From contig JAMWBK010000011.1 in the NCBI GenBank assembly GCA_029953675.1, positions 1,364,001-1,428,000 on the forward strand: a DNA stretch of 64,000 bases, in the 5' to 3' direction. The stretch comes from Rhodosorus marinus CCMP1338 (Eukaryota > Plantae > Rhodophyta). The notes beneath the pieces were generated by a model. The model searched no databases and had not been told where the DNA came from. It worked only from the letters and a program-made list of their open reading frames with translations. Position 1 is the stretch's first letter; each line of letters begins with the position of its first letter. The position numbers and the translations under genes were made by a program. Positions 1 through 41,977 of this stretch are shown one piece after another.

Positions 1-3000
1 AGTTTGGGTCTGACCATGCGGAGTTCACCAACCACAGAGCGTGGGTGTATCCATGTCGTCGCTTCCGTAACCGAGTCGATATGCTGCCGCCAGCTCTGGG
101 AAGTGTTTGTCGACAAGCTTCTTAGCCACGCGTCGATCAATTCGGTTAAATGCATTCTCAAGGTCAAGCCTGAGGACCACTGAATCAGGTTCGCATGACA
201 AGTGGGCCTGGATCGCATGCAGCGAGCGTTCACACCCGCCGCTGACGCCAATACCGAGTTGTAGTGGCACCAGGAGCTTGCGCACCCCGTCGACTACAGC
301 GCGAAGGGCCCGCTGCGTCGCTAGCTTTCGTAGAACCTCTGGTACGCCGATGGGCCGAACGCCGGGGTTTTCCTGGGGTGCTGATCCTTGCTTAGGCTTC
401 GCGAATGGTAGGAGTCTGCTGCTGCGAAGGGCGCGAGTCAGAGTCGGGGAGAATTTCTCCGGAGCGGATGCGAGTTGTCGCAGTGTGGACGCGCGTCATC
501 AGCGTGTTGTCTCTCGCTTCTCAGGGTAGTTAGCCTCTGAATAAACGGATCATCATCACTCGAATCAATGCCACTTGTGTCTGTTCAGTTCCACCTTGTG
601 TTTGTTCCGCTCGGAGTCCGCTAGGGCCCGGGCTCTTGACCCTGAGGGAGACGTGCCACAACGGACAGGAGTCCCTCTTCAGCCGCCGTTGTCGGATCCG
701 ACCTGTGCTTAAGGGCGTCGGTATCCAGGTTGAGGGAGTTCAGCTCTTGTGCGACCTCGTCGGGAAGGTCACCCCCGGCCGGGTCGGGAAAGAGCGCTTT
801 GAGTTGGCGCCAGGTAGCCTCCGCAAAAGGTGCCATCTCGGTGGCCTGTAGTCGACGGGCAGCATCTGAGAGCCGCCCCAAATGTGCTAGCTTCAAAGCT
901 TGCTTGTGGCGCCCCAGAATTTGGCGTCGAAAGGCGTCAGCTCCTTCCAGTGCGATTGTATGCGGCAGCGTAGACGCCTTGTCTTCTAGCGCGCTCCATA
1001 CCGTAGAGAATTCTCCTTCAAGTACGTGCGTTGCCTGAGTGCCAGGATCAAGTGCAGAGTGTCCAAGCACGAGGCCGGGAAGTCCGACAAGAAGCAGGCT
1101 GGCGTTCGGTGGTGCGCTGCTGTCCATGGCAAGCTCTAGTGCCGCACGGAGAAGGCGGTTCCACGTATTGACCTGGGCGCGTGGCAGGAATCGCCCTGTG
1201 GGCACCGGACAGTGTGTAAGACGCGTCCACTGCCTGCCTCCTTCCGTCACGTCGTCGACGAAGTCGCTCCACCGTTTAATCCAGTCTTGAAGATCCGAGA
1301 AGAACCTAGGCTCGTCGCGGCGTCGCTTCATTCCCCTACTTCTGCTTGGCATTATTGCGTTGTGTTTTCCTCGCGATCCTACGTGTCCATTGCGTGTTGG
1401 TTAGGGTGAGTATCCGCCTGGCTCACATTCGTATTCTTCGGGGTCTCCATTGATACCGGGGTCATCTCTGTATCTGGTCCGGGGCCAGCAGCGGATACTC
1501 GCTGACGCTTCTGTTGAGGTGGCTCCGGAAGGTTGCAGGGGAGTTCCGCGTGGGGATTGTCCTCGCGGTCAGTCTCCGCCGGTACTTGGGATGTTGCCCC
1601 GGAATCACCCTGAGTGTCAACAATCGCACGGGCTGCCTGTGCGTCACCCTGAAGAGACGAGGCTTCAGCGTCTGAGCTCGTTGCGGCTGCAGGCTCTGGG
1701 GGTTCCGCGCTCTCCCCGGGTACCGCGGGCGGAGATTGTCTTGCTTTGAGGAGTTCCAGTCGTGCCTCAAGATACTCGTGGAGCGCTGCGAGAGTATTGG
1801 AGGAGAGATGCCGCCGGCGGATCTTCGAACGAGTCCAGATAAGCTGTTCGATGGCCCGCTTCAGAGTTTGGGCCGCAATATCTGCGGGGCAATACCTTGG
1901 CGTTCTAGGTAGCCGAGCAGGTTGTCAGGCTACAGAGTCTCGCCAGTGTACAGGCTCACTTGACAATCCGCGTGTCGCAGGGTAAAGGATCCGAAAATCC
2001 CTGTTCGGAAAACTCCCCGAGAAATCGCGCTTTGTAGAATCGGGATCGCATCTGGATGGAAGAGCATGCAGGCATGGGATGCAATGAAGTCCACATGTGC
2101 CGCATAGGAGCTGGGGATCCTCAGTATTCTGCAAAGAACCGCTAAAAAGTCCGCGGGAGCCACCTCATCCATCCTGGGGGGTCGCACGTTCCGTAGGGAG
2201 GCGAGGACCGGTGTGACGTCGGGTCCCCAGCCTGACCCCCCGACCGTTGCGTGCAATTACCGCAGAGCTGCCTGCTGGGTCTGCGGTCCTGGGCGTGCAA
2301 CAGTTCTGAATCGAGCATCTCCTCTTCCTGGGGCGCACTGAGCTGCGAAATCGGCGTACGTTGGCCTGGCATTGCCGTTCCCAATGGCTGGGAAAGCCTC
2401 TGCATATTGCCCTGGATCGAGGACACCTGTCTCTCTCGGGCGCATGGAGCGAGTTCCTAAATCTTGGGCACCTGTCCTTGTCTGGTTATATCTGGGTATC
2501 CACGTCCCCAGATCTCCGGTCCCGTCCGAGATTTGAATTTGCTGGCGTCGTTGCATAACGGCCCTGTTGATCTCCTGTTGCTGTCTCCGTGGGGGGGGAG
2601 AATTCTCGCTTCCCTGGCCCCAAGTCCACATCTGGGGCGAGTCTGCTAGCTGGTGGAGGCGTCGAGTGACGCCAGTGAGGTCGCTGGTGCTCCCAATGCG
2701 GGAGTACAACTTAAAGCTCGCCTTGTAGAACTCCTCCACGGCTGCTTCCCCAATGCCCACACCATAACAAAACTGGTCACAGGTGCGCAGCTGTTGCATG
2801 AAAGAGGCGGCTGGATCATTAGTGGCATCAGTCTCATTCCTGCTCCCTGCCTGCGTAACGTCTTCTGCTGGTGTCGATGTCCTTGGTTGCTGCTCTGCTC
2901 CCACAGCGCGGAGCTGTAGTGCATGTAACACTTCCATGGCACCCGGTGCCGGTGGACCGGGGATGAGAATTGGCTCTGGGTACGGCCCCCGCACCTCCCG

Positions 3001-3060
3001 CACTATCATATTCTTCTGGTTTCCGAATTCCAACTTTGCTCCACGCCAACCCCAGAGCTT
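1..3060 (-). mobile_element. Family A CRE-like non-LTR retrotransposon, 5' half: degenerate ORF1 (~3033-1355) plus start of ORF2/RT, running off the window start
   Basis: ORF2 starts MPSRSRG at 1352. After the insert at 481-598 it reads RPIGVPEVLRKLA...LQLGIGVSGGCE...RLDLENAFNRIDR (early RT motifs), near-identical to the A copy at 34246-34600. ORFs 2257-3033, 1930-2256 and 1462-1770 share one frame, broken by stops. Confidence 0.85.
481..598 (+). mobile_element. Short 3'-end fragment of family D2, inserted antisense into the family A RT
   Basis: Encodes DARHQRVVSRFSG*, matching 18185-18229 (DARHQRLVSRFSG*), followed by an ATC-rich tail. The A frame (PGP-GLRAE / LRQLASAP) resumes on both sides. 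Confidence 0.8.
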
Positions 3061-3086
3061 TTACCCCAAACTAACCCAACCACCCC

Positions 3087-3693
3087 AGGTTACCCCAGAC
3101 TAACGTAACCGTAAGCTTTACTGGGCAGCTGCTTACTGCAGCGTAACACTACTTCTATCGCTATCTAGGGGAATACTTACTACAACCCCGCTACCGGGGT
3201 CTCATGCTACGTTCTAAAGAAAAAAAAGGCACCAGTGGATTCTCCAACTGGTCCACGCGCAAAGCGCTTAGCGCTATCTCCGCATTACCTCGCCAAAGTT
3301 GCCGGTTTATCTGCGATCTTATATCGCTCAGTTCTAGTCTCCTGTGCAAGAAATGCTTGCAGCTGTCCGGCAGAAACTCCTGTGCCATCGGTCCAGTCCG
3401 CCCAAATGTTTCTATTGCAATTGGGATGAACTTGTCATCCGGGTGTTCTAGCGTCATCGCCTCCTTGTAGTGCGCTTTCTTCCACCTCTCTGCACATCTT
3501 GCTGCATATCCACTCTGCTCCTGACTACGCCTCAGATACTTCCCTGGCAAAGGAGACATAACCGTCACGTCAAGCGCATACCGTTGAAATGTCCTCGGAT
3601 GCGTAGCAATGATGTCTGGCCGTAGCCCGTAGTTTTCAAAATACTTCTCTGGCTCCTGCTCGATGTCCACAAAGTTCCATCTGTTCAGCCACC
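3087..3693 (-). mobile_element. Family A 5'-truncated copy (RLE domain, 3' UTR, 16-mer tail)
   Basis: ORF 3191-3670: RPDIIATHP..YALDVTV..PIAIETFG..LWRGNA..ERSMRPR*. Ends GCTGCCCAGTAAAGCTTACGGTTACGTTAGTCTGGGGTAACC. Confidence 0.92.
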
Positions 3694-4955
3694 GTAACCC
3701 CGTAGCCTTTATTGGGCAGCTACCTAATGTAGCGCATCACACGATCACTACGTACGCACTAATCAAACCCGGACCCCCTGTCCAGGCGTCTCATCTAAAT
3801 TCTACTTAGGAGAAATATCGGTCTATCTGCGCGATCTTTCTCGATCGCGGGCTCAACTAGCGCAGCATTGTGCTGCCACAAAATGTGGTTTAATTGACCC
3901 CTCACCGACGATAGATGGTAGTCACGATCATGCAGGTGCGCGCTCGCCGTTCGAAGAAATTCAAGGCTTGCCTGGCCCATTCGACCAAAAGTCTCAAAAA
4001 TGAACGGCACAAGAACCACATCTCGGTTTTCCCCCCTCAGCACTTCCTTACAATTCAACGCCTTCGCTTGTTCTGCTTGTTTCGCAGCATACCCGCAGTT
4101 CCAGCTCGTATGTCTCAACTGATGCCTTTGAAGTGGCGATGTCACCATCATATCCACCACGTACACGCATCCGCTCGTCGGGTGTCGTGCAACGATGTCT
4201 GGTCGAATTCCAGACCCAGAAAAGAACCCCTGAGGTTCTACTTGTATCTCCGTGAAATTCCATAGGTTTAACCATCTACTCAGTTCGACCTTTAGCTCGT
4301 AGTGCCTCTTGGTTCGCATCCCCGATGACTTCCTGCCGTGGTGCAGCCGCTGGATCCCACGCACATCGTGTGGTTGCTCGCAGACTCTGCACGTGTGTGA
4401 CCGGCCTATTCCTTGCAGTGGTAGCCCTAGAAGCATCCGCATGCTCCACAACATCTCATTTCGCGTCAACTGCCGCGGCCCTGTACTAGGACAGTCGCCT
4501 AGTCAGACCCTGCACCTCGTTCCGGATGCCGATTGGATCCTCGCCCGGTCTAGGTCGTCCAGCGTTGAATCCCCAGTAAGCTCCTCAAAGGCTTGTCGGT
4601 GACACTCTCGAGAGAGCGTTTTTGGGATCGGACCGTCAAACCTTTGGGTACCTGTTGTGTCTTCCGCTGTGCCTTCGGCCGAGTCCTCCAGAGGTTGCCA
4701 ATCGGCCAGCCTCTGGATCCGTGCACTGGTCGTCGCTGGCAAACGTCGTCTAATTGCGCGACTTGCCTCCACCAGTTGCCAAGCATCGGTTGCCATCGAA
4801 GTCGCACCCGTGGCAGCGATTCTCCTTGTGCAGCCGCAATGCACTCCTGGGAAAGCCGTTCGAGGTAGCGTGATTCAGTGGTGCTCTCTTGCAGGCTGTG
4901 CTTCCACCCTGCATGGAAGGCAACTGGTTGAATTCTCGTGCGCGTGGCAAAGCCA
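3694..4955 (-). mobile_element. Family B 5'-truncated copy (Zn knuckle + RLE)
   Basis: ORFs 4503-4844 and 3795-4469: CRVC..H, KRHYEL, RPDIVARHP, VVDMMVT, PFIFETFG. 3' UTR ends GCTGCCCAATAAAGGCTACGGGGTTACG. Confidence 0.9.
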
Positions 4956-4974
4956 ACCCCAGACTAACTCCCCC

Positions 4975-6974: not shown

Positions 6975-7862
6975 GGTACGTAGGGCTTCAGGCTATGCTA
7001 AGCAGTCCAGTAAAGCGGATTCTCCGTACGAGGCGTCACACTCGCCTCAAGTACATCCTCAGCGAATTTTTGACTCGGATAGGGCATACGGTTGAAGTTG
7101 AGTCGGAACTGCCAAGATCAATCTCGGACTCTGCACCGCCCCGTTGTATAGCCGATCTCCTCGTCTCCGACGCTGCTGCCAGACGCTCAACATATGTGGA
7201 CCTTGCGATTACCTGCCCCGTGGCCAGCGCCCACCTCACCGCAGCCGCCCGCCGCCGGGGGGCCGCGGCTTCAGCCCTTCGAAGAGTTAAGGAACCGGTA
7301 TGCTGAGAGCATGGCCAGTCTGCCTTGCGCTGAGGGTCGCTCTCACCGGTTCCAGCCATTCATTGTGGAAAGCTTTGGTCACGTGGATAAGTCGGGTTTA
7401 GAGTGGTTGCGGAAATGTTTTGCTGAGCATCCTACTGAATATTTGGCGCTCTTGAGGCGTTTAAGCGTCTCCCTTTGGCGATATTCCAGCCACATGCTTT
7501 CCGAGGCGCGCCATCGGCGCCTGGGGTTGCATGCTTCCCTCCCTAGTTATTAGTTCATCTTCACGCCTTGCGTAGCGCTTCAGGCTATGCTAGTAAAGTC
7601 AAGTAAAGTCGGGGGGAGTAAAGCGGAAATGTTTCACTGAGCATCCTGTTGAATACTTGGAACTTTTGCGGCGTTTACGTGTCTCTCTATGGCGATATTC
7701 GAGAAGCATGCTTGCCGAGGCGCGCCATCGGCGCCTGGGTTTGCACGCTTCCCTACCTAGTTCTTAGTTCCTTTTCACGGTTTGCGTAGCGCTTTAGGTT
7801 ATGCTAGTAAAGTCAGTCAGTAAAGCCCAGTAAGCGCAGTAAAGCCCAGTAAAGCCCAGTAC
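6975..7862 (+). mobile_element. Tandem family C 3'-end fragments with (AGTAAAGYCC)n tails
   Basis: RLE fragment ending LHASLPSY* (7553) with tail at 7590-7625; second short copy 7626-7862 ends in AGTAAAGCCC repeats. Confidence 0.88.
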
Positions 7863-13081: not shown

Positions 13082-13751
13082 GGCCGAACGATTGAGCAAC
13101 CAAGCAATCCACAGTCCCAGAACGGATGCCTACCAACCCAAACACACACCTTCTCACTACGACTTATGCCAACGAGCAAACCCACCCGGATAGCGCTCCA
13201 GAACACATAAAAAGGGATAAACAGCCGCAAGCACCGAATGTCAGTTCTCTTCCAATCCTGACGTACCCGAACTCCAACTATGCATATATGATATCAGTGC
13301 ACACCCAACAAATCTTCCATGCACATGGGCTCTTGTGACGCAAAGGGAAAAATCGACCGAAATATGCTGAGGCAATAAACCATTCATCATCATCAGAGTA
13401 GGAGTATAAAATAGGCTACGTTAGCGTAGAATATGAGAAGGCGAAAGGGAAAAGGTAGACAAGTAACCACCAACAGAGCCTCCCTAAAACCCAAACCTAA
13501 GCAAAACATCCTCCCCAACCCTCCAAACCCCTTCCCCCCCCCAATAATAGGGATGCGCCCAGAAAGGGTTGCAGTAGTAAAGGCGCAAATTGTTAAAAAG
13601 GATTCGATGGATATTCAAAGTGGAAGCTGGAGTAGGCCATGGACCTTCAGTGCGACCTTAGTCGATCCTAGTCTTCCTTCCACTTGATTTTGTTTTTGCA
13701 TCCGATTAGCCAGATTAGCACTCTGCGGTGTGCACGACCAAATAAAAGAAT

Positions 13752-14350
13752 CCACTGTTTTTTTCTGTTTTTTTATCTCTAACGGTTTTTTTATCTCTAA
13801 CTGCTTTTTTAGCTTGTATAAAGAAACGACTGTTTTTTTCTGTTTTTTTATCTCTAACGTTTTGTTTTTTTTATCTCTATCTGCTTTTCTAGGTTGTATA
13901 AAGAAACAACTGTTTTTTTTCTGTTTTTTTATCTCTAACTTTTTTTTTTGATCTCTAACTGCTTTTTTAGGTTGTAGTTCGCCACTGTCTCCCTACACCT
14001 CGTAAAAGAAGCGCCTGTTTTTTTCTGTTTTTTTATCTTTAACGTTTGTTTTTTTGGATATCTAACTGCTTTTTTAGGTTGTATAAACAAACGACTGTTT
14101 GTTTTCTGTTTTTTTATCTCTAACGTTTTATTTTGATCTCTAACTGCTTTTTTTGGTTGTCCAAAAAAACGTAACTGTTTTTTCTGTTTTCTTAACTCTA
14201 ACGTCTTTTGTTTTATGTCTAACTGTTGTTTTAAGGTGTAGTTTGCCACTGTCTCCCTACACCTTGTAAAAGAAAGGACTGTTTTTTTCTGTTTTTGTTT
14301 TATCTCTGACGGTTTTTTTAGGTTGTAGTTTGTCTCCCTACACCTCGTGA
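13752..14350. repeat. T-rich minisatellite, about 7-8 units of ~78 bp and ~105 bp
   Basis: Recurring CTGTTTTTTTCTGTTTTTTTATCTCTAAC...CTGCTTTTTTAGGTTGT. Long units add GCCACTGTCTCCCTACACCTYGTAAAAGAA. Confidence 0.9.
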
Positions 14351-18256: not shown

Positions 18257-20740
18257 TTGAACGTGTTGCACCGCATTGATCGCCGGCTTGCAAAACGCAT
18301 CATCGACGCGCGTTTTCCGGAGTTGCTCCCACTCTATGTGCTTGGGTATGGTAGTGATTCTGCCGACGGCTCGTACCACTTCGGCTGGCTTCCTGAAGAA
18401 AACTCCCCTTCTTCCTCGCGAGATCGATTCTTCCTCCGCTCGCGTACTGGCGTTCAACAGGGCGATCCCCTCGCACCGGTGCTCCGTGCCCTTGCTCTTT
18501 CGCCATATCTTATGGCGATGCGCACTCTCTTTCCCAGCATCACGATGCTCGGGCTCCATGACGACATTAGCTTGGTTGTCCCCTATTACACCATTCAAGA
18601 GGCATTTCACTGGAGTCAAAAGAGTTTTAAGCTCTCTCGGCGCCCGACTGCAACCGGATAAGTGCGTCCTCTTTGGCTCGCCGCGGCTTGTCAATCACGA
18701 CTTCCCCGCAGTTGATTTTACGCGGCATGGAGTGATGCTACACTCTGTCCCTGTGGGCACCCGGGCCTTTGTCATCCGAGCCTGCCGCAAGTTGCAACTA
18801 CACACGCCAAGCTCGTCAAAGGGATTCAGAAACTCCCAGAAGGCGAGTTGCAGACGAAGATGGCCCTCTTTCGCTACTGTGCTGGTCCGAGGCTGGACTA
18901 TCATCTCCGGTGCCTGGCCCTTGTTTTTGGTGCGCTTCTCGCTACTGAGGCGGACACAATCACAATGCACGAGTTGGACACGTTGTGCGGAGGTCTGCTT
19001 ATTCTGCAAGGGCTCCCACCGGAAGAGTTGGATACCGTGAAAGTCCAAATTCGCTTACCTGGCAAGTGGGGTGGGCTTGGTCTGGCTACGCGCGTTCGCA
19101 TTCACCCGATTGCTTTTTACGCCGTTTGGCTTCGCACGCTTCAGAATAATGTGGCTGACAATACCTTTTTGAGACGTCTGGGCACGGCGTGTCGCGGGGC
19201 CGATCCCAACGTGGTTACGGCGCTTGAACCTCTCGCCAGTTCTGCAGACCACCTGGAACACCAACTCATGCTCGCCAGCCGATGGACAACTTCTCGCCTC
19301 AGCTTCCGCACTTCTGCTCGTATTCGAACGCTCGCACTTTGGTCTAAGGCGCTTCCAACAGGTGATGCAGTCTCTGCTTCCATCAATCCTCCGCTCGCAT
19401 GTCCTCTACAACACATACTCTCAGGAGAGCCACCGTAGAGCGTTCGAGAATATCGTGGATAATTCCGATCTTGACGATTGCACTCGTGCCCGTGTCCGAT
19501 CTGCTTCCGGTGCCGGCGCTGGCGGCTGGCTTCGTGACCTCCCTAGCACAGGGCCTGAGCTCCTTTCCACCGAAGAAATTCGCTGCAGCTTGCGTCTTCT
19601 TTTGGGGCTCCCGATACCTGGTCCTCGCACTACCCCTGAGTGCACGGTCTGTGGCAAACCACACGCGGCGGATGGGACCCAACGCTTATTCCACTGCTCT
19701 ACTTCGGCCGGGAACTGGACTCTGCGGCATAATCGCATTCATGATGAACTGGACTTTACTAGCATAGCCTGAAGCGCTACGCAAAGCGTGAAGATGAACT
19801 AATAACTAGGGAGGGAAGCATGCAACCCCAGGCGCCGATGGCGCGCCTCGGAAAGCATGTCGCTGGAATATCGCCAAAGGGAGACACTTAAACGCCTCAA
19901 GAGCGTTTGAGCGCCAAATATTCAGTAGGATGCTCAGCAAAACATTTCCGCAACCACTCTAAACCCGACTTATCCACGTGACCAAAGCTTTCCACAATGA
20001 ATGGCTGGAACCGGTGAGAGCGACCCTCAGCGCAAGGCAGACTGGCCATGCTCTCAGCATACCGTCGTTCCTTAACTCAAAAATGAACTTGCGCGTCACT
20101 TACGCCGGTGGGCACCTGAATGAGATTCAAGTTGAGCCCTCCGGGTTTTTTGAGGGTAGTCGACTTCGACCCGACATTGTTGTTCGTCATCACTGCACAG
20201 GCAAGCAGCACGTTCTTGATGTCAAGGTGGATTCCCCTCTACGAGTCCACCTAGTTGCTCGAGCCACATGTCAAACCGGGTATGCTGCCGCCAACGCGGA
20301 GGTCGGGAAGCGAGCCAAATATCGTGATGCCATCGATGACCGCAGTGACTTCCAATTTGTACCTTTCGACGTCGAAGGGTTTGGAAGACTTGGTCAACCC
20401 GCCCAAGATTTCATCAACGAAACTACTGAACACCTTGGACACAAAACAGACGCGTGTACTCTCCTGCGTGAGGACCTTAGTCGAGAACTATGGCGTGGTA
20501 CGGCTAGCTTAGCGATCCGTGCCACGCGCAAAGATGATCATGTTCGGACAATGTTCCCTGTTGTTCTGGGAGGCGATCGACAAAGACCAGGCAGACCGAT
20601 CGATATTCCCACTAGCTAGAAGTTAGATGAGACCCCTGGACAGGGGGTCTAGGTGAGTTTAGAGCGAAGATAGAGTAGTGGTATTTCGCTGCGGTAGGTA
20701 GCTGCCGAATAAAGGCTACGGGGTTACGTTAGTCTGGGGT
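18257..20740 (+). mobile_element. Family B2 5'-truncated element (RT to RLE), split by a family C insertion
   Basis: HRIDRR, QQGDPLAP, LHDD, GGLGLATR, CTVC..H, RHNRIHDEL | ELARH..RPDIVVRH..PFDVEGFG. Ends in the AATAAAGGCTACGGGTTACGTTAGTCTGGGGTT terminus. Confidence 0.9.
19751..20082 (-). mobile_element. Family C 3' fragment nested antisense in B2, with 7-bp TSD ATGAACT
   Basis: Reverse complement of the C terminus and tail. ATGAACT at 19744-19750 and 20083-20089. Confidence 0.9.
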
Positions 20741-22710
20741 TGACACCTCTCGCCTGACTCTCCAAGCAGCTACAGGAGTCCAACAGGGAGATCCACTGGG
20801 GCCGGTGCTACACGCACTATCCCTGGCGCCCTTTCTAAGAGCGTTGCGAGCCAAGTTCTCCAACGAAACGATTGCTGCTATCCACGACGATATCACGATT
20901 GTCGGGCCGCTACAAGCCTTGAAGGCATCCCTGGCATGGGGAAAAACTGTGCTCCCCTCTCTTGGAGCACGCCTGCAACTCGGCAAGTGCACTGTGTACG
21001 GGCGAACACTGACTACCACGCGAGTGGTCAATCATGAGATTCCTGGAGTCCAAGTGACCAGAGACGGAGTCACCATCCACTCGATACCGATAGGCAGCCG
21101 AGAATATATCGAACAGGAGTGCCGGGGGCTGCAAAATAAGCATGAGAAACTCTTTGAGGAAATTGCCAAGCTCCCACAACCGGAGCTTACGACGCAAATT
21201 GCCCTCTCCAGGTTCTGTGCGGAAACGCGGTTAGACTATGTTCTACGATGCCTCGCATACGAATTTGGAAGAACTCTGGCACGCGAGGCCGATGAGATGA
21301 CCAGATATCATCTGGAAATTCTATTCGGAGGCCTCGCTACGACAGCTGTAGAGGACGACGAGTACGCAGAGCTGATCTCGGACCAAATCGCTCTGCCCTG
21401 CAGCTGGGGGCGGGGGGTTGGGTTTCGCTACTCGAAAGCGCGTCCAACCCATCGCGTTTTACTCGTCATGGAGAAACACCTTCCGGAACAATGAAGATGA
21501 ATGGCCATACCTGACTGAACTAGAGCGGGAGGTTTCGGCAGAACGCTCACCAGACACATACGAGCCGACGGAGCAACGATGGTCGACTGCACAGCTGACG
21601 GACCAGATCTGTGCATCGTCGCGAGCAATACAACGGAGGCTCGGACCAGAAACCCCGCCGCGGATCTTGGCACTGACTACCCTGCAACAACCGCCAGAAA
21701 CATCTCTTCGAAGCGCACCGGGCGAGACTGCAGCTTGGAATAATGGTTCAATACAACAAACCCTCTCTCTGGAATGCACAATGGTGTGCCTCTCGAGAGA
21801 GAGGCACACCATTGTGCATTCCAAAGGTTGGTCACCAACCCACGAATCTCCCCTGAAAACCGAGCTTCGAGTCCATAGAGCAAGAGCCTGAGGGGTACTT
21901 CGAGAACTACGGACTGCGACCTGACGCGCTTTGCGCGTAGACCAGTTGGAGAATCCGCTGGTGCCTGTTTTTTCTTTTGAACGTAGCATGAGACCCCGGT
22001 AGCGGGGTTCCAGTAAGTTTCTCCCTAGATAGGATTAGACGTAGTGCTGCGCTGCAGTAGGCAGCTGCCCAGTAAAACTTACGGTTACTAGGCCCGAGGA
22101 CCAAACAAAGGTATGCGCTGGATGTGACTGCGGTGTCACCATTACAGGGAAAATATTTGCGGCGGAGCCAAGATGATAGTGGATACGCGGCGAGAGCTGC
22201 GGAGAAGTGGAAAATCGCTCACTACAAGGAAGCGATGGTGATCGAGAAACTGGATGACAAGTTCATCCCGATAGCGATAGAGACGTTTGGGCGTACGGGG
22301 CGAATGGCACAAGAGTTCCTCCGCGACAGCTGCAAACACCTACTGCACAGGAGTGAGGAGCTGAGAGACGTGAGATCCCAGATAAACCGGCAACTATGGC
22401 GAGGTAACGCAGAGACAGCACTAGGCGCTTCGTCTGGGGTTCCTCCGCGACAGCTGCAAACACTTACTGCACAGGAGTGAGGAGCTGAGAGATGTGAGAT
22501 CTCAGATGAACCGGCAACTATGGCGAGGTAATGCAGAGATAGCACTAGTCGCTTTGCGCGTGGACCAGCTGGAGAATCCGCTGGTGCCTGTTTTTTCTTT
22601 GAACGTAGCATGAGACCCCGGTAGCGGGGTTCCAGTAAGTTTCTCCCTAGATAGGATTAGACGTAGTGTTGCGCTGCAGTAGGCAGCTGCCCAGTAAAGC
22701 TTACGGTTAC
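20741..22710 (+). mobile_element. Head-to-tail family A truncated copies (20741-22088 with internal deletions; 22089-22710)
   Basis: QQGDP, AIHDD, RLDYVLRCL and RLE motifs; two A termini ending GGTTAC. Confidence 0.9.
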
Positions 22711-23760
22711 CTGGAGCGCCCGTAGGCCGGTTTTGGGAGTCTTGGTGGATGATTTTCGAAACGAATTCAACAGCGTCTCGTGGACGCATGCGTTGGAGGT
22801 GATCCGACGGGTTTTTCCGGAAGCGTGGCCCATCCCTCTCTGGTCTTTACCGAAGGGGGAGCATCTCCTACTGCACCAGGGAGGGCACTGTTTTCCAAGC
22901 ACGTACTCGAGTCCAACAAGGCGATCCTTGTGGGCCTCTACTTCATACTGGTGCCTTGCAGCTCGTTCTCCTGCGTCTCGCGACTGAGGTGCCGGCTCTT
23001 CGTATCTACGCCTATCACGACGACGCGACCTTGCTGGGCGCCCCTGAAACCCTGGCTCGGGGTTCGACCCAGGTCAAAACGATTGCACGTCGAGTAGGTC
23101 TGACGGTGGAATCAGAAAAGTGTCGTTTTCTCGCTCCAAAGTGAAGCTTCGATGGCTTCTCTGCCATCTAATCTACGAATCATTGACGAACGTGAAGGGT
23201 CGGAGCACCACGGCGTCGGTTTCGGGAGCAACAACTTCGTCCAAGCCCCTTGCGAACGAGTTTTGACACGGCACAAGCAGCTCACTGACGCCATTGAGCG
23301 CCTTCTAGAATGCATGCTGCAATTGGCCTGCTTGCTTTCCCGCTTTTGTGCCGGTTCCCGACTCAACTACTGCTTGCGTAGCCTACCACCCGACTGCAGT
23401 TCGTGGATCGCCGCGAAGGCCGACGAGATGGCGCTGCACCACTGGGGCACGCTCTTGGATGAACCCCTCGATCTTGAAGCTGCTCCCGACAGGGACTTAG
23501 TTCGTGCCCAGCTTGCTCTACTGTTGCGGTTAGGGGGATTTGGCGTCGCCGACCGTTGGCTCGTCTGCTCTCCTGCGGCGGGCGCGTCCTGGGCAACCGC
23601 GCTCCGTACCTTGGTGAATTTTCGGATACCAAGTGCCTGCCTTTTGGCTCGAGCACAGACTAGCGAGGACCCAGTGACCCTTCCGCCCCAGCTTTTGACG
23701 ATCCATGATGGCCTACAACAGGCGTTCGGCCTAGCGCTTCAGGCTATTCTAGTAAACCCC
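22711..23760 (+). mobile_element. Family C RT fragment joined to a family C 3' terminus
   Basis: DFRNEFN, QQGDPCG (frameshifted), AYHDD, GGFG. LTIHDGLQQAF matches TINDGLQHAF at 53629; then AGCGCTTCAGGCTATTCTAGTAAA. Confidence 0.82.
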
Positions 23761-24080
23761 AGGCGCACGGGCAATGTCTCTCAAATGAGGTTCTACCGAT
23801 GAGCGACTATTGCTGGTTGAATATTATTCCGGCTGGCCCTCGGCGGCGGGCTATAGCAGTGAGGTGGGCGCTGGCCACAGGGCATGTAATCGCGAGGTCA
23901 ACCTATGCATAATCTATCTGGCCTTTACAAATCTATCTGGACTTACTCTATCTAGCGTGGTACCTAGTTTCTAATTCCCTGCTCGCGGGTTTTGCGTAGC
24001 TTTAAGGCGATGGTTTCTAGTTTGATTTATATTCAATGCACAACTTACAATGCAATGAAACAATCTTAGCCAAAAGTCCT

Positions 24081-27000
24081 TCAACACCTGGATCGGTTAA
24101 CTGCGACGATTTCGATATTGTCCGGACAGGTCTCAGAGATGGCGACAGCGACTGCCTCGGATAAGCCCTGAATCCGCCTAGAGGAAATGCTCAATACCCC
24201 GAGAACCTCGTTTGAGCTGATGACGACGCCATCTGCTTGCTCCCATGAAACTCCCTTCGGCTTTTGAGGCCATTCCCAGGATACCTCAAGGATCTTCGGC
24301 AGGTTCACAGCAGCATCCTTCGACGAGAAAGTGATCATACAGGCGCTAGCCGTCTCACCGGAGAGTCTCGTCACGGATGCAACCTTCTCTACTGATACCC
24401 TGTAAGAACTGCAACCCGCTTTCGGCTCGCGGGCCACGGTTTCCGGCAGAAGTAGCTCGGTCGATGTTTCAGCCGGAGCCGTTGTCGGGGACGTCGTAGG
24501 AGTCCCAGTATAAGTCGGTGTCGGCGTGGGTGTCTGAGTCGGAGTCGCTGTCGGTGTCGGGGTTGGAGTGGGAGTCGGGGTCTCATCCGAATCGAAAGAG
24601 TTGCACATGATTGGAATTGTCGAGTTGAGGGCGTCGGCAAAGCTCGACCTCACGTAGCTTCCGGTGAAGTAGAGTCGAATGTTGGTAATGCCCTTGATGT
24701 CCTGGAGCCTGGCATCGATCTGATAGTTGCTGAATGGGCTTATGTCGATGAATTTCTCCGTCGAGAAGACGGCATTTTGTCGGATGTAGTTGGATGCCAT
24801 CCACTCCTTGATTTCCAGCTCGTCACAAGCAGGTGCACCCCCAAAGTACATAAACGTTCGCTTTCGGTTGGCGTGCGTATACTTCTTCACGTAGTACATC
24901 GAGTCCTCATCATCTTCCGCCTCTGCAACTCGAGCGACTCCGGACATGCTCTTGTGCGTGATGTCGACGACTGGACTCGTCTCATCCGACACGCCGTCAA
25001 AAACGACAAACATGCTGTTCATCGAGATCATGGGGAAGAAGAGCGGATCGTCCAGTCCCGGGAGATTGTTGAAAGCCGGATGCGATGGGTCAATGCAAAA
25101 ATTGATCGACCCCGTCTCCAGAAACTCCGCCCAGTTATCTTCTCCTACTGTATCCGCTTTGATATTGTAAGGGCCCCAAAAGGTGCCATACTCCATCAGT
25201 TGGCCTTGCGTGTAGGTGGTCTCGTACCAACTCTTGAGCGACTTGCGAAGTTGAATGATCGCGTCAGACGCACAGCTGAAGTATAGGCTCCCTGATGTGT
25301 CCAGAAGGGAAGTTTCCCACTCGCAGTTCGCGAGGCTAACGGTGTCTACCGACGACATCGAGCCCATCATGAGATAGTTCCTCGCGGTGAAGACGGCCTC
25401 CAGATCTCGGTGAAAATCGGCTATCAGAAGGTTGTAGTTGGTCTGGTGAGCGGTCTTAACAGCCGGTGCAGCGGGATTTATCATGTTGTTCTTCATCTCG
25501 ACCGCCAGTACAGCCACGACGTTCTGGAGGTAGAGCTTTGTCGCGGTGACCTGCTTGAGGTAGCTCATATAGGATGAGTAAAGCGCGATGAGGTCGTTCT
25601 TTTGGTTGACCCACATCTCCAACCCATCGAATGCCCGAAGAAATCCAGTCGCCGAGGTGTAGCACTCGGTTTTCATGTACCCCACGTAGTCTTGGAGCTC
25701 TTTTCTGTCAAGCGCCACCATCCCGTTACTAATCGAGGTTTGAACATCGTTAACTTGAGCAGCTAGCGCGACGGCTTCGTCATAGTCGTCCGCACTGTAG
25801 ACGCTCTCCAGCGGATCCGCGAGCGTCTCTGTACCCTCCGTAAGAAATCCAATATCGGCCATGATAGCGTCGTAGCTCACTTCATAGTTTGACCAGTCGG
25901 CGCTTTCTCCCGGCGAAGGGAAAAAGCCTATCAATTCGTTCGTCAGCGAGGGTATCGTAGCAAACTTGGGGTTACTGCTCAAGGTCTCAATGCCGGCGAA
26001 AACCGCCTTCGTTGTATCACCGAGCGACTTACTGTCGGTAAAACTGCCGACTTTGGACATTGCCTTGGTCACTGCGAATGCCGCGTCGAAGACGTTCGCA
26101 AAGAAACTCACAAACTGCATCACCTTGTTGAACTTGGCACGCTTTTCGACCTTACGCCAGCACTCGTCCATTTTAGCTTGCTGCGACTCCATCGTGCTCT
26201 GGTACTTCCAAATGTTCTGATCAGTCACGGACATCGACCGGTTCACCTCCATGATCTCCTCCATCAGCGCCAGCTGCTTGGCCAGCTGCGAGTCGATACC
26301 CGTCTGCGCGTTGCTCGTCGCGTTGGAGAGGAGCTCCATGGAAGCTTCCGAATCCTCAACGCTGCTTCGGTAGGCGTCGTAGTAGTACTCCATGGATTCT
26401 CCGAGCTGGCGCTGTGTTTCAAGGTAGTCGAGCAGGTACTCAAAGCTCATGACGCTGAGCTGGTTGGCATTCGTACCGGAGGAGGTGGTCAACGGATTCG
26501 CACCCTTGATAATAGAAATCGCCTTGCCTGCTAGCGAGGTGTACTTGGCTTTCTCCGTCTCGTCTGAAGTCTGATTGGCCACTAGCTGAGCATTGTAGAG
26601 CATATCGGAAACTGACAGGAGAATCATGGTGTACGCGTTTTGGTTTTCTTCGGAGTCATCGTTGAAGAACATCATATCCAGCATCCTCTTCGAGAGGCTG
26701 AGACCGTAGTCGATGTACGCCAACGGCTGAGGAAAGTTTTCGTGGGCAAAGGACCGCGGATCGTCGTAGTCATTGGTGTCCCACTCCTCCACTTCAGCGC
26801 CGATTGTTGCTCGGAATAACATCGGTAGCGGATCGTGAGGCTTCTTTCCCTTCCACCCAGAGTTGTTTGATATTCCCTTGTTGCCGTGAAGTGGATAACC
26901 TGACAATGAAACTGTTTCGTAGTAGTTTACGTTCAGAAATGGGCCCTTCTGCCATGTTCGCGTGTAGCAGTTCGTCGTGAGCTGGCCCCCTATTCCGGGC

Positions 27001-28011
27001 TCTCCTGGCTTCCCGCCAGGCCCTCCTCTGCCGGGATTAGATTCACCATTGAAAGAAATCAGCTGCTTCTTCATTGCTAAGGGCCCCATCTGCTTCTCCT
27101 CCGACAACAACGCTCGAGTAAATCTGTACGGTTCCTGCATGTCCACCAGGTCCACCTCTTCCTCCTTGTCCCGCCTGACCACCCGACATCGGATAACCGG
27201 GCTGATAGTACACACATTTCTTCTTGGGTCCGTTCTTGGTACCTGTAGGACACTCCTTACACCAAGAATCTTTGCATTTCCCAGCCACCCAGTTTTTCTT
27301 CTTGCCGCACTCGACTCCATCGATCGGCTTCTGTGCATTACCTCCGTCTCCACCATATCCACCGGTACTACCGTCGCTCCCATCAGTTCTTATGGTCATG
27401 GTATATCCTCCCTCGATTAGGCCCTCGATGTTCATGTACTTGGCGACCATGATGAAGCTTCCCCCCTGGTTGCCCGGACTGCCAATGGCTCCCGTACCTC
27501 CCGGTTTACCCTTTTTACCATGGCGATTCACGTTGACATCCTTCGTTCTCACCACAGGATCGGGGGTCTTCGGCGTGTCTGGCGCGATCGGTGGAGGTAC
27601 CGTGACCTCCGTTGCCTTCAGGTTGATCTCAAAATCTCCATCGCTCTGAATCTCAATGATATTCGCGACAATCGTCACGTTCGTACCCCGCATCTCAGCA
27701 GCCACCCCTGCCGCGCCCTTGATCAGAACGTAGTACGCGTATACTATGATATCCTGCTCAGTTCCAAACAACTTTGTCGTGCCCGTGCTATTCGACGTGA
27801 AGTCCATCGTGTAGAAGAACGGTGCATAGATTGCAAACGTTCCGCTCTCATCACCGTCCACGTATCCAGAACTCACATCCTGAGCCATCAAACACGTGGT
27901 ATTGGAGAATCCCCATCCATCACACACGCTCACGTCATCAGCACTCACTCCTCCGAAGCAGAGGAGCATCGCGAAGGTCATAGACCCAACCACCGCAAAC
28001 GTTCGCTTCAT
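24081..28011 (-). CDS. Large secreted protein (~1300 aa): Gly-rich/collagen-like N-terminus, long helical region, putative TcA-like C-terminal domain, PT linker; one frame break near 27050
   Basis: ORF 27043-28011 (signal peptide MKRTFAVVGSMTFAMLLCFGGVSA, GXX runs) overlaps ORF 24081-27383 in another frame, and the Gly-rich pattern continues across the junction. Functional label is inference. Confidence 0.75.
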
Positions 28012-28169: not shown

Positions 28170-29560
28170 AAGCTATCCGTGAAGTCCCAGTAAGAAGCAG
28201 TTAAGGGAAAGTTCCACAGCAAAACGTTGACACGAGGCAGAAAGCGTTAGTCTGGATTTCGCTAGGTCTTCTTCTTCCAACCGTAAGCTTTACTGACAAC
28301 ACAGCTGCCTACCACAGACTTCTAGGAGTCAACACGAGCTTGATTATCCCTGTTTTGTTCAACCCGCGTTTCAAAATATGGTTTTCTGGAAGCAACTGGG
28401 GTTACGTTAGTCTGGGGTAACCCCTCACTTTTCCTCTTGGAACCACTCCCTGGACAACAACTCAGCACTCTAAAAATGCTCATGCAAATCGCCTTTCTAT
28501 ATGGAACGATAGAGCGCCTATGGAAAGTGCTGTTCTTGATAAACTTGCAAAACTCAGGATAATCGGCGAAGACCGCGTTTCAATGCTTTTCTGGAAGCAA
28601 CTGCCAGCAAAACCACCACCACCAGCAAAAACCAGTTCAGGGGAAATTTCCATAGAAATTTCTTGGCGCGAGGCAAAGAGCATTCCGCGAATCATCAACA
28701 CAAGGCCGACTACCCCTGCTTCGTTCAACTATCGCTTCAAAATTTGCTTTTATGAAAGCAACCGGCCCGGAATTGTCTTTGAAGTTTTACAGTAATCTTT
28801 TCACAATCGTTTGAATGACTATATCCGACCTGATCAAGTTCGAGCGCATCAAGGCAACTAACATATTCCAGGACAGGAGGTTGTTTCCGTATTAATTCCT
28901 TCACCGTTAAACCATACATATAAACCGCCCCTCAGAAGATTTCGTGAACAGCCAAATGTTAGAAGATGACGTCAATGCATGTCGAATGTTCCCGTAATAG
29001 GTCTACCTGTAGGCCAGAGACTAATTGTGGAGTTAGCCATGGATATCCGTGAAGTCCCAGTAAGAAGCAGTTAAGGGAAACTTCCACAGCAAAACATTGA
29101 CACGAGGCAGAAAGCGTACATTTCGCTAGGTCTTCTTCTTGCAACCGCAAGCTTTACTGGGCAAGCTGCGCACCACAGACTTCTAGGTGTCAACACGAGC
29201 TTGATTATCCCTGTTTCGCTCAACCCGCTTTTCAAAATATGCTTTTCTGGAAGCGACTGCTAGCAAAACCGCTACCACCACCAGCAATAACCAGTTGAGG
29301 GAAAATTTCCATAGAAACTTCTTGGCACGAGACAAAGAGCATTCCGCGAGGCCTTCTTCCACGAATCATCAACACAAGGCCGACTAACCCCGCTTCGTTC
29401 AACTGGACTTTACTAGCAACTGAATGAATGGTTACTAACGCTTAAAATTTTGCTTTTTTGAAAGCAACCGGCACGGGATTGTCTTCGAAGTTTTACAGTA
29501 ATCTACTCACAATCGTTTGAATGACTATATCCGACCTATCAAGTTCGAGTGCTCAAGGCA
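28170..29560. repeat. Diverged tandem duplication (~870-bp period) carrying an A/B-like retroelement terminus on the minus strand
   Basis: ATCCGTGAAGTCCCAGTAAGAAGCAGTTAAGGGAAA at ~28176 and ~29045, with co-linear flanks. AACCGYAAGCTTTACTG...AGCTGC at ~28279 and ~29144. Confidence 0.85.
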
Positions 29561-31629: not shown

Positions 31630-34600
31630 TATTTGCGGCGGAGCCAAGATGATAGCGGATACGCGGCGAGAGCTGCGGAGAAGTGGAAAATCGCTCACTA
31701 CAAGGAAGCGATGGTGATCGAGAAACCGGATGACAAGTTCATCCCGATAGCGTTAGAGACGTTTGGGCGTACGGGGCAAATGGCACAAGAGTTCCTCCGC
31801 GACAGCTGCAAACACCTACTGCACAGGAGTGAGGAGCTGAGAGACGTGAGATCCCAGATAAACCGGCAACTATGGCGAGGTAACGCAGAGACAGCAATAG
31901 GCGCTTTGCGCGTGGACCAGCTGGAGAATCCGCTGGTTCCTGTTTTTTCTTTTGAACGTAGCATGAGACCCCGGTAGCGGGGTTCCAGTAAGTTTTTCCC
32001 TAGATAGGATTAGACGTAGTGTTGCGCTGCAGCAGGCAGCTGCCCAGTAAAGCTTACGTTACGTTGGTCTGGGGTTCGGCCTGACTTTCTAGCCCGACAC
32101 CCACGAACAGGCAAGCTCTACGTGATCGATGTGAATCTGGGGTTACGTTAGTCAAGGCCAAATGCACGCTCTACGGCCGAGCCTTGACGACGGCGCGAGT
32201 CATCAATCGCGAGATACCTGGCATACATGTCACCCGAGAAGGCGTCACTATCCATTCGATCCCGATGGGAAACCGGGAATATATCGAGCACGAGTGCCGT
32301 GCGCTTCAAAATAAGCACGAAAAAGCTCATCAAGGAATCAAGGAAATAGCACAGCCACCGCAACAGGAACTTAACGCACAGGTCGCATTGTTCAGGTACT
32401 GCGCGGAAACGCGGCTAGATTACCTGCTACGATGCCTAGCCTACCCGTTCGGCCGCAGTCTGGCACGGGAGGCGGACACCATGACGAGATATAATCTGGA
32501 AACCTTGCTCGGAGGCCTCGCTACCTACCTCTGGCATGGAGGACGAGGAGCACCTGGGACACATCTTGGAACATATTGCGCTGCCTTGCTGGTTGGGGGG
32601 GATTTGGGTTCGCTCCTCGACGGCGTATCCAACCTATTGCTTACTACTCGGCATGGACAAATACCTTTCGAAGCAATACAGGGGACTGGCCTCACATTGC
32701 TGAGCTGCAGAGGCAGGTCTATACAGACAGAACTCCGGCTACGAACAGCGCGACACGACTAAAATGGTCCACAGAACACCTCGCAGACCAGATACAATCA
32801 TCTGCTCGAGCGATACAACGCAGGCTGCGGCCCGAAACTCCGCCGCGGATCAGGAGACTGGCCACCCTGCAGCAGACGAGGGAAAACGCCCCAGAAAACT
32901 GTGGCGATTGGAATAATGGTTCTACACAACAAACTCTCTCTCGGGAGGCACACCATTCAGCATTCCAACGCCTGGTTAGCAATCCGCGCATCTCTGGCGA
33001 ACATCGCGCTCGAATCAGGTCGGCGGCGGGCTCTGGATCGGGAGTCTGGCTGCGCGAACTGCCGACGTTGGAGCCGAAAAAGCTGAGCTCGATCGAAATG
33101 CAGGTGAATATCCGACAACTACTGGGGCTACCGATTCCAGGGCTGCGAACTACGGAAAAATGTACTCTATGCCGTGGTAAACACGGAGCAAATGGAGTAC
33201 AACGCTTTCATCATTGCCCCACGTCGACGGGGCTGTGGCAACGTAGGCATGACGAGATATGCACGGAGATCGCAAGGTCGCTGAACCGGTGGAACTTTGT
33301 GGACATCGAGCAGGAGCCAGAGAAATATTTTGAAAATTACGCGCTACGGCCAGACATCATTGCTACGCATCCGAGGACATTGCAACGGTATGCGCTGGAC
33401 GTGACGGTTGTGTCTCCTTTGTAGGGGAAGTATCTGAGGCGTAGTCAGGAGGAGAGTGGATATGCAGCAAGATGTGCAGAGAGGTGGAAGAAAGCGTACT
33501 ACAAGGAGGCGATGACGCTAGAACACCCAGATGACAAGTTCATCCCAATTGCAATAGAAAAATTTGGGCGGACTGGACCGATGGCACAGGAGTTTCTGCG
33601 GGACAGCTGCAAGCATTTGTTGCACCGGAGCCTAGAACTGAGCGATATAAGATCGCAGATAAACCGGCAACTTTGGCGAGGTAATGCGGAGATAGCGCTA
33701 GGCGCTTTGCGCTTGGACCAGTTGGAGAATCCACTGGTGCCTGTTTTTTCTTTAGAACGTAGCATGAGACCCCGGTAGCGGGGTTGGAGTAAGCATTCCC
33801 CTAGATAGCGATAAAGTAGTGTTACGCTGCAGTAGGCAGCTGCCCAGTAAAGCTTACGGTTACGTTAGTCTTTATAAGGAAGTGCTGAGGGGGCAAAACC
33901 GAGATGTGGTTCTTGTGCCGTTCATTTTTGAGACTTTTGGTCGAATGGGCCAGGCAAGCCTTGAATTTCTTCGAACGGCGAGCGCGCACCTGCATGATCG
34001 TGACTCCCATCTATCGTTGGTGAGGGGTCAACTAAACCGCATTTTGTGGCAGCACAATGCTGCGCTAGTTGAGCACGCGATCTAGAAAGATCGCGCAGAT
34101 AGACCGATATTTCCCCTAAGTAGAATTTAGATGAGACTCCTGGACAGGGAGTCCAGGTTTGGTTAGTGCGTACGTAGTGATCGTGTGATGCGCTACACTA
34201 GGTAGCTGCCCAATAAAGGCTACGGGGTTACGTTAGTCTGTGGTTTGCGCAAGGTTGCAACGCAATGGACTCTTCACGCGGTTATGGACAGGGTGCGTGA
34301 GCTCCTGGTGCCCTTACAACTGGGTATTGGAGTAAGTGGCGGGTGCGAACGCTCACTTCACAGGATCCAGGCCCATTTGTCATGCGAACCCGATTCGGTG
34401 GTCCTTCGGCTAGACCTGGAGACTGCCTTTAATCGCATCGACCGACGACTTGCCAAGCAACTGGTGGACGAGCACTTCCCGGAGCTTGCACCACTGTATA
34501 GACTTGGCTATGGAAGCGACAACGCGGACTCACCGACGCTCTGTGGCTGGCGATCTTCCCCTGGACAGAACGAAACCGACACCTCTCGCCCGACTCTGCA

Positions 34601-39439: not shown

Positions 39440-39935
39440 ACCCCAGACTAGCGCAACCCCGCGTTAGCAGGGCTTTTCTCCAGGTACGCCGTCAGCGAGG
39501 GCAGGCGGTTCTCCAGCGAAGCAACGACAAGAAGGCTGGTCAGTTTTGAGATCAGTACGTGCGGCGACGCTTCGTCGCAGTTGCTGAGAGGGGCCTCGGT
39601 GCTGAATGCGCCCATGCGCAGTCCACGAGCGGAGAGACGGCAGCGTCGGCCACCGGAAGAGGTGGGGAAAACCCAGCCATCACAAAAGAGTGTGGCGAGG
39701 AGAAGTTTCACCACCAAAGCGCCACAAAAACTGGCGAATATCCAATACAAAGCACCACGAATCCTCCACCACAACCCAACGAAAAGGAGAGAAAGCCCGC
39801 AGACAAGCCACACACTCAAAAACCCCGGGCAAAGACGGAAGTCAGTGCCTCCGAACAAACACTATGATAATCAAAAACCCGCCCAACCCAACACCATAAA
39901 CCCTCACAAGCCACCAGAACATCTATATTGCCGGT
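39440..39935 (-). mobile_element. 5' end of a D-related element
   Basis: LSARGLRMGAFST..ISKLTSLLVVASLENRLPSLTAYLE vs LSARVELCVGGFST..CSKLTSLLVTASQEHRLPLLIAYLE (54686-55270). The 5' UTR TATAGAT..GTGAGGG..TATGGTG also matches. Confidence 0.8.
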
Positions 39936-41480: not shown

Positions 41481-41977
41481 AATGAAGTTTTCTAATTTGC
41501 ATACACAGTGCTGCTCACGCAATCTTGCTCGACTCTAGTCCTTAGTCTTCTTGCACGCCTTACCTGGACTTTACTGGACTTTACTAGCATAGCCTGAAGC
41601 CTTACGTAGCGCTTCAGGCTATGCTAATAAACCCAATTGGCAACAAAACAAAGTGGAGGAGAAAAGTTGAACATTAGATGAATGTGTTTAGCGGACGTTG
41701 AAAACATGAATGAGTTTGCGGACACTGAAAAAAAAAACGATAGAAGGTGTGGTCGGTTGCTTTCGCCCGGGTGTTGATGAGTGGAAAGGATGGAAAGATT
41801 TGTTTCTATGAATCGAAATGCATTGGAATAGAGATGTATTGGGGCCGAGGTCCCACACTATTTAATCTACGAGGTTAGCCTGCGGAGCATGCCGAGGTGT
41901 GAGAAATTGAGTTCGGCTCAGCGACCTTTTTTGGCACAGGGACCAATTCTGGCTCATTGTTGGGAGTTTGAAGAAAC

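Follow-up and report, generated by a model that had tools for sequence, protein, structure and literature searches.

Among the described retrotransposons closest to the system reported here are MoTeR1 and MoTeR2 of Pyricularia (Magnaporthe) oryzae (PMC3374306, cited in PMC10088271), long interspersed nuclear elements (LINEs) with a restriction-like endonuclease that lie in fixed orientation in a short tandem repeat at chromosome ends, in head-to-tail arrays parted by short repeat tracts. We analysed a 64,000-bp stretch of the unicellular red alga Rhodosorus marinus CCMP1338 (the window; assembly GCA_029953675.1, contig JAMWBK010000011.1 of 1,442,050 bp, approximately positions 1,364,001–1,428,000), which spans 14–78 kb from the right end of this contig (hereafter contig 11) and is a nest of LINE fragments of several families. 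A G-rich 16-mer, GGGGTTACGTTAGTCT, and its parts sit at junctions between the LINE copies, including those of two families termed A and B. This motif very probably combines the 3′ tail and the duplicated insertion site of several site-specific LINE families that are stacked head to tail near chromosome ends. The A/B system is new among site-specific LINEs, which are themselves a known kind.

Families A and B share the MoTeR features named above. MoTeR also has a variant, repeat-like 5′ sequence, comparable to the G-rich degenerate leader of the full-length elements found here (termed F). Its target, the TTAGGG telomere, is proven, whereas the target here is a 16-mer that is at most a candidate telomere repeat. 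GilM and GilT of Giardia (PMC64710), which are placed in the CRE clade (PMC10088271), are likewise endonuclease-bearing LINEs in head-to-tail tandem arrays at chromosome ends; their terminal copies, however, are capped by the known Giardia telomere repeat, and no 16-mer tail and target system is known for them. TRAS1 and SART1 of Bombyx mori resemble A and B in inserting into a specific repeat in fixed orientation with precise nicks on both strands, in making up a sizeable genome fraction and in forming arrays at chromosome ends, but they belong to the R1 clade, have poly(A) tails and an endonuclease of the APE type, and are proven to target the TTAGG telomere. R2 shares with A and B a C-terminal zinc knuckle and restriction-like endonuclease fold, a precise 3′ junction with a variable 5′ end, and a 3′ untranslated region (UTR) whose structure is probably read by the reverse transcriptase. 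The R2 target is a single site in 28S ribosomal DNA, nicked at positions 2 bp apart, whereas the A/B nicks, as deduced from junctions, would lie 13–14 nt apart in a target that the tail of the element itself restores. CRE1/CRE2, SLACS and CZAR also combine a restriction-like endonuclease and site specificity with long target duplications, but insert into spliced-leader RNA genes, whereas no small-RNA gene flanks any A/B copy. The microsatellite-specific LINEs Dong, Waldo, Kibi and Koshi have, like A and B, a 3′ tail that equals the target repeat and can pair with the nicked target, but their units are 2–4 nt long and pre-exist widely in the host genome.

The R. marinus genome is assembled in 13 large contigs with 15% repeats (PMC10250338), of which the RepeatMasker table assigns 4,036 copies, or 9.04% of the genome, to LINE/CRE-SLACS with the families unspecified (PMC10250338). 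R. marinus repeats have so far been counted, not described; for the A and B families we can now propose a concrete insertion mechanism, in which a target of approximately 20 bp is nicked at two defined positions and is restored by the inserted element, ready for another insertion, so that copies would stack head to tail near chromosome ends.

The elements and their C-terminal endonuclease

The Pfam profile RVT_1 matches two large open reading frames (ORFs) of related families in the window, of 825 and 762 aa, and the best PDB sequence matches of the RVT_1-bearing ORF that was searched were L1 ORF2p and R2. The C-terminal part common to A, B, C and other families had no Pfam match, and a PDB sequence search with the A C-terminus returned no match; its likeness to R2 came from fold comparison alone. 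An AlphaFold model of this region (predicted local distance difference test score, 87.8) was compared with the PDB by Foldseek, and the top seven matches were all R2 proteins (probability 1.00; template modelling score, 0.53–0.68). An alignment of 25 C-terminal sequences, including 20 relatives, revealed conserved C..C, RH, E, RPD, D and K positions. The families, A and B among them, are thus LINEs with a zinc knuckle and R2-type restriction-like endonuclease C-terminal to the reverse transcriptase, in agreement with an earlier note on this DNA, made from its letters, which had taken them for LINEs of this type. Protein searches with the element ORFs returned four R. marinus proteins and nothing else. 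Their assignment to the CRE clade is tentative and comes from the RepeatMasker label LINE/CRE-SLACS in the genome paper (PMC10250338), and the families described here probably belong to LINE/CRE, the largest repeat class of R. marinus, with 9% of the genome.

The proteins of A and B are only approximately 40% identical in the C-terminal region, yet the two families have the motif in common, and the families that use it comprise A, B, a family termed A′, the full-length F forms (F1 and F2) and at least one more. A scan of 3′ ends revealed that all A copies end in ..CCCAGTAAAGCTTAC followed by GGTTAC (variants GTTAC and CGTTAC), and all B copies in ..CCCAATAAAGGCTAC followed by GGGGTTAC. In both families the 3′ UTR runs from a small conserved hairpin through ..CCCA(G/A)TAAAG..TAC to the tail, GGTTAC in A and GGGGTTAC in B. 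The hairpin, a 5-bp stem in the last 30 nt of the 3′ UTR (GCTGC-loop-GCAGC in A, GCTAC-loop-GTAGC in B), is paired in 98.6% of cells and includes one compensatory GC-to-AU change, which provides modest evidence for a putative recognition structure.

Junctions between copies and the proposed insertion mechanism

The window contains three exact copies of GGGGTTACGTTAGTCT and seven with up to two mismatches (0.00 expected from 100 shuffles), and eight copies of the 13-mer GTTAGTCTGGGGT with up to one mismatch, compared with 0.07 expected. A two-mismatch version of the motif, GGGGTTGCGCTAGTCTGGGGT, lies away from junctions at 39440–39460 (−), within the decayed ORF1 region of an F-like element. 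The motif sites and the element copies that they join are as follows (positions in the window, strand, feature).

4955–4968, −: left target copy GTTAGTCTGGGGTT at the 5′ junction of a 5′-truncated B copy; identical to the 13 nt at 3092–3104
3702–4954, −: 5′-truncated B-family LINE copy carrying the last part of the reverse transcriptase, the zinc knuckle, the restriction-like endonuclease and a 3′ UTR ending ..CAATAAAGGCTAC (tblastn map, ORF translation and 3′ end scan)
3694–3701, −: B tail GGGGTTAC; the next element starts at once, with zero target-derived bases
3111–3693, −: 5′-truncated A-family LINE copy ending ..CCCAGTAAAGCTTAC (3′ end scan, tblastn map); an inverted copy of 33276–33813, 95% complementary
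3092–3110, −: A tail GGTTAC (3105–3110) and right target copy GTTAGTCTGGGGT (3092–3104), together reading GGTTACGTTAGTCTGGGGT, after which degenerate G-rich repeats continue to about 3060 (junction table)
1–3091, −: F1, a full-length A-like element that runs off the window, with a degenerate G-rich leader (3060–3091), the ORF1 region and the first part of the reverse transcriptase (tblastn matches at 64–396); collinear with the F2 copy at window-coordinate 71.8–73.5 kb, and 77% complementary, as an inverted copy, to the A copy at 34248–34576
20720–20741, +: B tail GGGGTTAC and 14-nt target copy GTTAGTCTGGGGTT (22 nt), then a 5′-truncated A copy
22083–22088, +: A tail GGTTAC, directly followed by the next 5′-truncated A copy (3′ end scan)
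22705–22710, +: A tail GGTTAC, directly followed by a 5′-truncated LINE of another family (3′ end scan, tblastn map)
28396–28418, +: G-strand piece CTGGGGTTACGTTAGTCTGGGGT (23 nt) joined to an inverted element end (AACCCCTCAC..)
32058–32076, +: A tail GTTAC and target copy GTTGGTCTGGGGTT with one mismatch (3′ end scan)
32136–32153, +: TCTGGGGTTACGTTAGTC between a 59-bp fragment and a 5′-truncated A copy, with no element 3′ end attached
33858–33871, +: A tail GGTTAC and 8 nt of target (GTTAGTCT), then a 5′-truncated B copy (junction table)
34224–34245, +: B tail GGGGTTAC and 14-nt target copy GTTAGTCTGTGGTT, which has one mismatch, then a 5′-truncated A copy
37028–37033, +: A tail variant CGTTAC, directly followed by another 5′-truncated A copy (3′ end scan)
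50718–50723, −: A tail GGTTAC that adjoins the inverted tail (AGTAAAGTCC)n of family C (3′ end scan)

To these sites we added sequence beyond the window on contig 11 (locus L002, numbered in continued window coordinates) and near the right end of contig 7 (JAMWBK010000007.1, read from 26 kb to 1.9 kb from that end); the sequence read stops 4.5 kb and 1.9 kb, respectively, short of the two right ends. The resulting junction table comprises 15 A/B-type 3′ ends, of which the window and its extension supply 13 and loci L004 and L005 one each; L005 carries the same tail and spacer at another chromosome end. All 15 ends have ..TT(A/G)C, and the bases that follow it fall into discrete classes: target-derived sequence after the tail measures 0–1 nt at 7 of the ends, 8 nt at 1 and 13–14 nt at 7. 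A further case outside the table, in a JGI contig (L003), has 15 nt, and among the 15 ends and L003 this part never exceeds 15 nt. At junctions of length 0, the next element is 5′-truncated and starts exactly past ..TTAC. The tail (GG)GGTTAC is element-encoded, since it is present at every element 3′ end, has a family-specific length and is kept at inverted and off-target junctions, and the 13–14-mer GTTAGTCTGGGGT(T) is target DNA. The B and A compound at 3105–4954 (−) has GTTAGTCTGGGGTT on its 5′ side and GTTAGTCTGGGGT past its last tail. A/B-type elements thus use a specific target and have a precise 3′ junction, whereas their 5′ truncation varies, and we found no A/B copy alone in unique DNA with unrelated flanks.

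The junctions also bear on what the earlier note had claimed. Direct inspection of each site that it listed and the shuffle counts confirmed that the sites are real and the motif overrepresented; GTTAGTCTGGGGT indeed lies on both sides of the compound, which the note had likened to a target-site duplication; and the junction length classes, together with the flanking duplicates, support its view of the motif as 3′ tail and landing site of sequence-specific insertion. The motif had been placed at nearly every A/B junction, which holds for all or part of it but not for the full unit, as 7 of the 15 3′ ends carry the tail alone (5–8 nt). The tandem unit in circular permutations that the note had described is mostly a composite of the tail (GG)GGTTAC and the 13–14-bp GTTAGTCTGGGGT(T), although true arrays of 29, 34 and 41 nt exist outside the window; GGGGTTAC followed by GTTAGTCTGGGGTT reads as 1.4 tandem units, which explains the apparent permutations.

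Wherever more than the tail trails an A/B-type 3′ end, the element sense strand is continuous with the G-strand. In this respect the R. marinus elements differ from MoTeR, whose sense strand follows the C-strand. In the three chains examined, at 20.7–23.6 kb, 31.6–37.5 kb and 4968–1 on the minus strand, the last copy alone keeps the 13–14-mer.

From these junctions we infer that the endonuclease would recognize approximately 20 bp, ..GGTTAC^GTTAGTCTGGGGT(T)^, with the GGGGTTACGTTAGTCTGGGGTTAC duplex as its predicted substrate. The bottom strand would be nicked opposite TTAC^G and serve there as the primer for reverse transcription, with the C of ..TTAC as the first base copied, which would account for the invariant start of the complementary DNA (cDNA) at this base. 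A top-strand nick 13–14 nt downstream would then yield a target-site duplication of 13–14 bp. The tail of the new element and the right duplicate would rebuild the complete target while the left duplicate stays behind the upstream element, so that each insertion would add a target along with an element, and successive copies would line up head to tail with the youngest downstream; chains would therefore grow downstream and only their last copy would retain the 13–14-mer. An aborted insertion that copies the last bases alone could add 14 + 2 = 16 bp, the 14-bp duplicate and two non-overlapping tail bases, and short perfect arrays might build themselves in this way.

Four inverted junctions of the form ..TCTGGGGT|AACCCC.. 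were found: one at a B copy at window-coordinate 67721, one at an unnamed family at 28418, one palindromic and one at the F1 leader, the first two leading onto antisense element ends. They may reflect priming from a G-strand 3′ end or the fusion of two such ends; a cDNA fold-back was considered and dropped, because the G-strand has no pairing partner. In an F2-type copy (L006, 21412–21450), ORF1 meets the reverse-transcriptase region across an internal deletion, and the deletion site holds a palindromic filler, TTAGTCTGGGGTTACGTTAGTCTGGGGT|AACCCCAGACT, that looks like a head-to-head fusion of two G-strand ends.

The G-strand piece at 28396 lies in a low-GC stretch containing an 870-bp tandem duplication of 90% identity (28174–29349). 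Each duplicate has an inverted A-like 3′ end followed by GGTTG(G/C)AAGAAGAAGACCTAGCGAAAT, and one carries CCAGACTAACG at the position of GTACG in the other. The duplicates differ by an insert of approximately 170 bp at 28396, in which 20 nt of G-strand precede an inverted element end between imperfect duplications of 31–35 bp; the sister copy (29020–29380) is empty and motif-free. An insertion can therefore bring part of the motif along with it. Twin priming was rejected for this insert, as the order of its segments does not fit.

Arrays near the contig ends and the origin of the first targets

Longer arrays of the motif occur 4–8 kb beyond the window on contig 11. A 29-nt array lies 80 bp past the stop codon of a Spondin_N-domain host gene and abuts an inverted B copy; a 34-nt array trails an A′ copy that is cut inside the endonuclease, between the RHDE and RPD motifs, and lies ahead of a full-length A-like element, F2. 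On contig 7, GGGGTTACGT precedes the first LINE fragment past the host genes, and AGTTAC and a 13-mer come after that fragment. A 41-nt array on this contig trails a D/E-type copy whose sister copy runs past the break, with CTG common at the junction, and precedes an F2-type 5′ end; it is the longest array seen, with at most 2.6 units. The limit of about 1.5 units per run given in the earlier note holds inside the window but is exceeded by the 29- and 34-nt arrays and by the 41-nt array near another contig end. That note had also considered that the motif might occur solely on element 3′ ends; it occurs as well beside a host gene and 3′-truncated elements.

All eight arrays without an attached element 3′ end, on two contigs, point their G-strand towards the nearby contig end, at junctions onto unrelated or 3′-truncated sequence, of which one is inside the duplication-flanked insertion and one at the internal deletion described above. 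The boundary between array and element differs between two F2 copies (..TCTGGG+CTGGGG and ..GGGGTTA+G), so that the arrays probably pre-date the insertions. On both contig 7 and contig 11, the outermost element visible near the right end is an F2-type copy with its tail outward. An A′ element on contig 11, 7 kb from the contig end, forms a near-perfect inverted duplication (window-coordinates 69677–70883 (−) and 71029–71300 (+); 98.7% identity over 149 bp and 95% over 65 bp, with a spacer of approximately 270 bp between the main arms) that resembles a fold-back rearrangement. Two motif loci are at most 80 kb and 26 kb away from a contig end, and one A copy is internal: it belongs to a LINE cluster on contig 13, with a decayed motif of approximately 1.8 units, 300 kb from the nearest end (800 kb of 1107 kb). 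An A-like element of 68% protein identity in L003 (2,684 bp, JGI sample 3300016967) ends ..AATAAAGCTTAC CGTTACGTTAGTCTGGGGTTA and is followed by the next 5′-truncated copy; as L003 carries both tail and motif, the motif occurs beyond the R. marinus assembly. Two scans of metagenome contigs, one with 1.5 units of the motif and one with an 18-mer, gave no match, in a collection evidently without L003.

Several points weigh against tail and duplicated target as the full account of the motif. The nick positions are deduced from junctions, and no clean empty/filled pair was found for the canonical target. The four inverted junctions need an extra assumption, either that the top-strand nick served as primer or that two ends fused. 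Several arrays lie on 3′-truncated elements or host DNA, for which a purely element-driven scheme would need off-target insertions of RNAs with a 5′ array, and an ancestral target is still required. For the origin of the first targets, we lean slightly towards propagation by the elements themselves over a repeat made by telomerase. If the motif is not a terminal repeat, the system shows how a retrotransposon can maintain and amplify its landing sites with no host repeat involved, which would bear on the origin of LINE-rich chromosome domains.

An origin by telomerase nevertheless has to be entertained, if tentatively. It agrees with the target-site mechanism and differs on the origin of the arrays alone: (GGGGTTACGTTAGTCT)n would be the R. 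marinus telomere repeat, the telomerase RNA template would contain ACCCCAGACTAACGTAACCCC, A, B and F would be telomere-specific LINEs, and the arrays would be remnants of ends that were healed and re-invaded. Chromosome ends could then be mosaics of very short telomere tracts and LINEs, repeatedly broken, healed and re-invaded, a picture that we regard as equally tentative. The 29-, 34- and 41-nt arrays, joined directly to the flank of the Spondin_N gene, the cut A′ copy and the broken D/E-type copy, the outward G-strands of all eight arrays and the fold-back look like healed chromosome breaks and for this reason raise the standing of this explanation; an inverted duplication so close to the end of contig 11 is typical of end breakage. 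Arrays that probably pre-date the F2-type insertions, the F2-type elements outermost at both contig ends and a motif common to LINE families of approximately 40% protein identity also fit. Canonical telomere motifs, sought as dimers, were absent from about 140 kb examined, which may be counted on the same side, although we otherwise grade it as neutral. Red-algal telomere motifs are unusual and poorly charted (PMC7046594).

Against a telomeric origin, all arrays have at most 2.6 units, and with long tracts two F2 hits within the first 2–3 units would be unlikely. The motif piece at 28396 came inside a duplication-flanked insertion into a site itself motif-free, and the A copy on contig 13 has its decayed motif far from the nearest contig end. 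Telomeres are reported on 12 contigs in the genome paper, with no comment on anything unusual about their unit (PMC10250338), and the telomere sequence is not given in the text or supplements of that paper that were examined (PMC10250338). If the repeat is nonetheless telomeric, it would give red algae, whose telomeres are poorly known, their first known telomere-targeting LINE system. A telomere unit of 16 nt would be far longer than any known outside yeasts, and telomeres invaded as in Bombyx or Magnaporthe would then extend to a further eukaryotic lineage.

It is very improbable that the motif is purely an element-encoded slippage tail, with insertion lacking any sequence preference. Other LINE families in the window do have distinct tails of their own, such as (CAGTAAAGYC)n in family C, and one insertion, at 28396, brought a motif piece into an unrelated site. 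However, the part past ..TTAC is missing at seven junctions and ends at the same phase when present, the motif also stands on the 5′ side of 5′-truncated copies, and solo A/B copies with unrelated flanks were not found in unique DNA; the junction table already contradicts this explanation.

Equally hard to credit is a target within a multicopy host gene (small RNA, ribosomal RNA or spliced leader), as for R2 or CRE/SLACS: such genes are often hit by LINEs with this endonuclease (PMC4640811), but the motif flanks are never a common gene and the window has no transfer RNAs and a single Rfam hit, a U4-like fragment elsewhere and unrelated to the motif, so that a small-RNA or spliced-leader gene was rejected as the target.

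Other families, repeats and host genes

The tails of family C LINEs are tandem 10-mers, (CAGTAAAGYC)n, at 7818–7861, 37468–37491, 41564–41585 and 50672–50717 in the window and at 18528–18616 in L005. These 10-mers derive from the terminal motif CAGTAAAG, which is single in A and B. Family C inserts inside other LINEs, not at the 16-mer; family D ends ..CCATTCGTTCGTTCG, and each family has its own tail.

The Rfam hit is a 76-nt match to U4 small nuclear RNA (snRNA) at 23757–23832 (+) (RF00015, 50.8 bits against a gathering score of 46). It starts exactly at the 3′ end of a C-family LINE (..GGCTATTCTAGTAAA) and could be a LINE–snRNA chimeric retrocopy or reflect an insertion beside a U4 gene. 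A transfer RNA scan of the window found none.

Three host genes lie among the LINEs, each a single uninterrupted ORF; the 878-aa and ABC-transporter ORFs match contig JAMWBK010000011.1 and so fix the position of the window.

24081–27383, −: ORF of 1100 aa with no Pfam match
45344–47980, +: CEMIP-type beta-helix protein, 878 aa
59478–63530, −: full ABC-B transporter, 1350 aa

Three further tandem repeats were noted. A T-rich repeat at 13743–14320, with periods of approximately 80, 185 and 264 bp, is built from CTGTTTTTTT and ATCTCTAACG blocks. An array of (GGCAATTG)n with approximately 11 copies at 44361–44447 and a 74-bp repeat in three copies at 50091–50310 are both unrelated to the motif.

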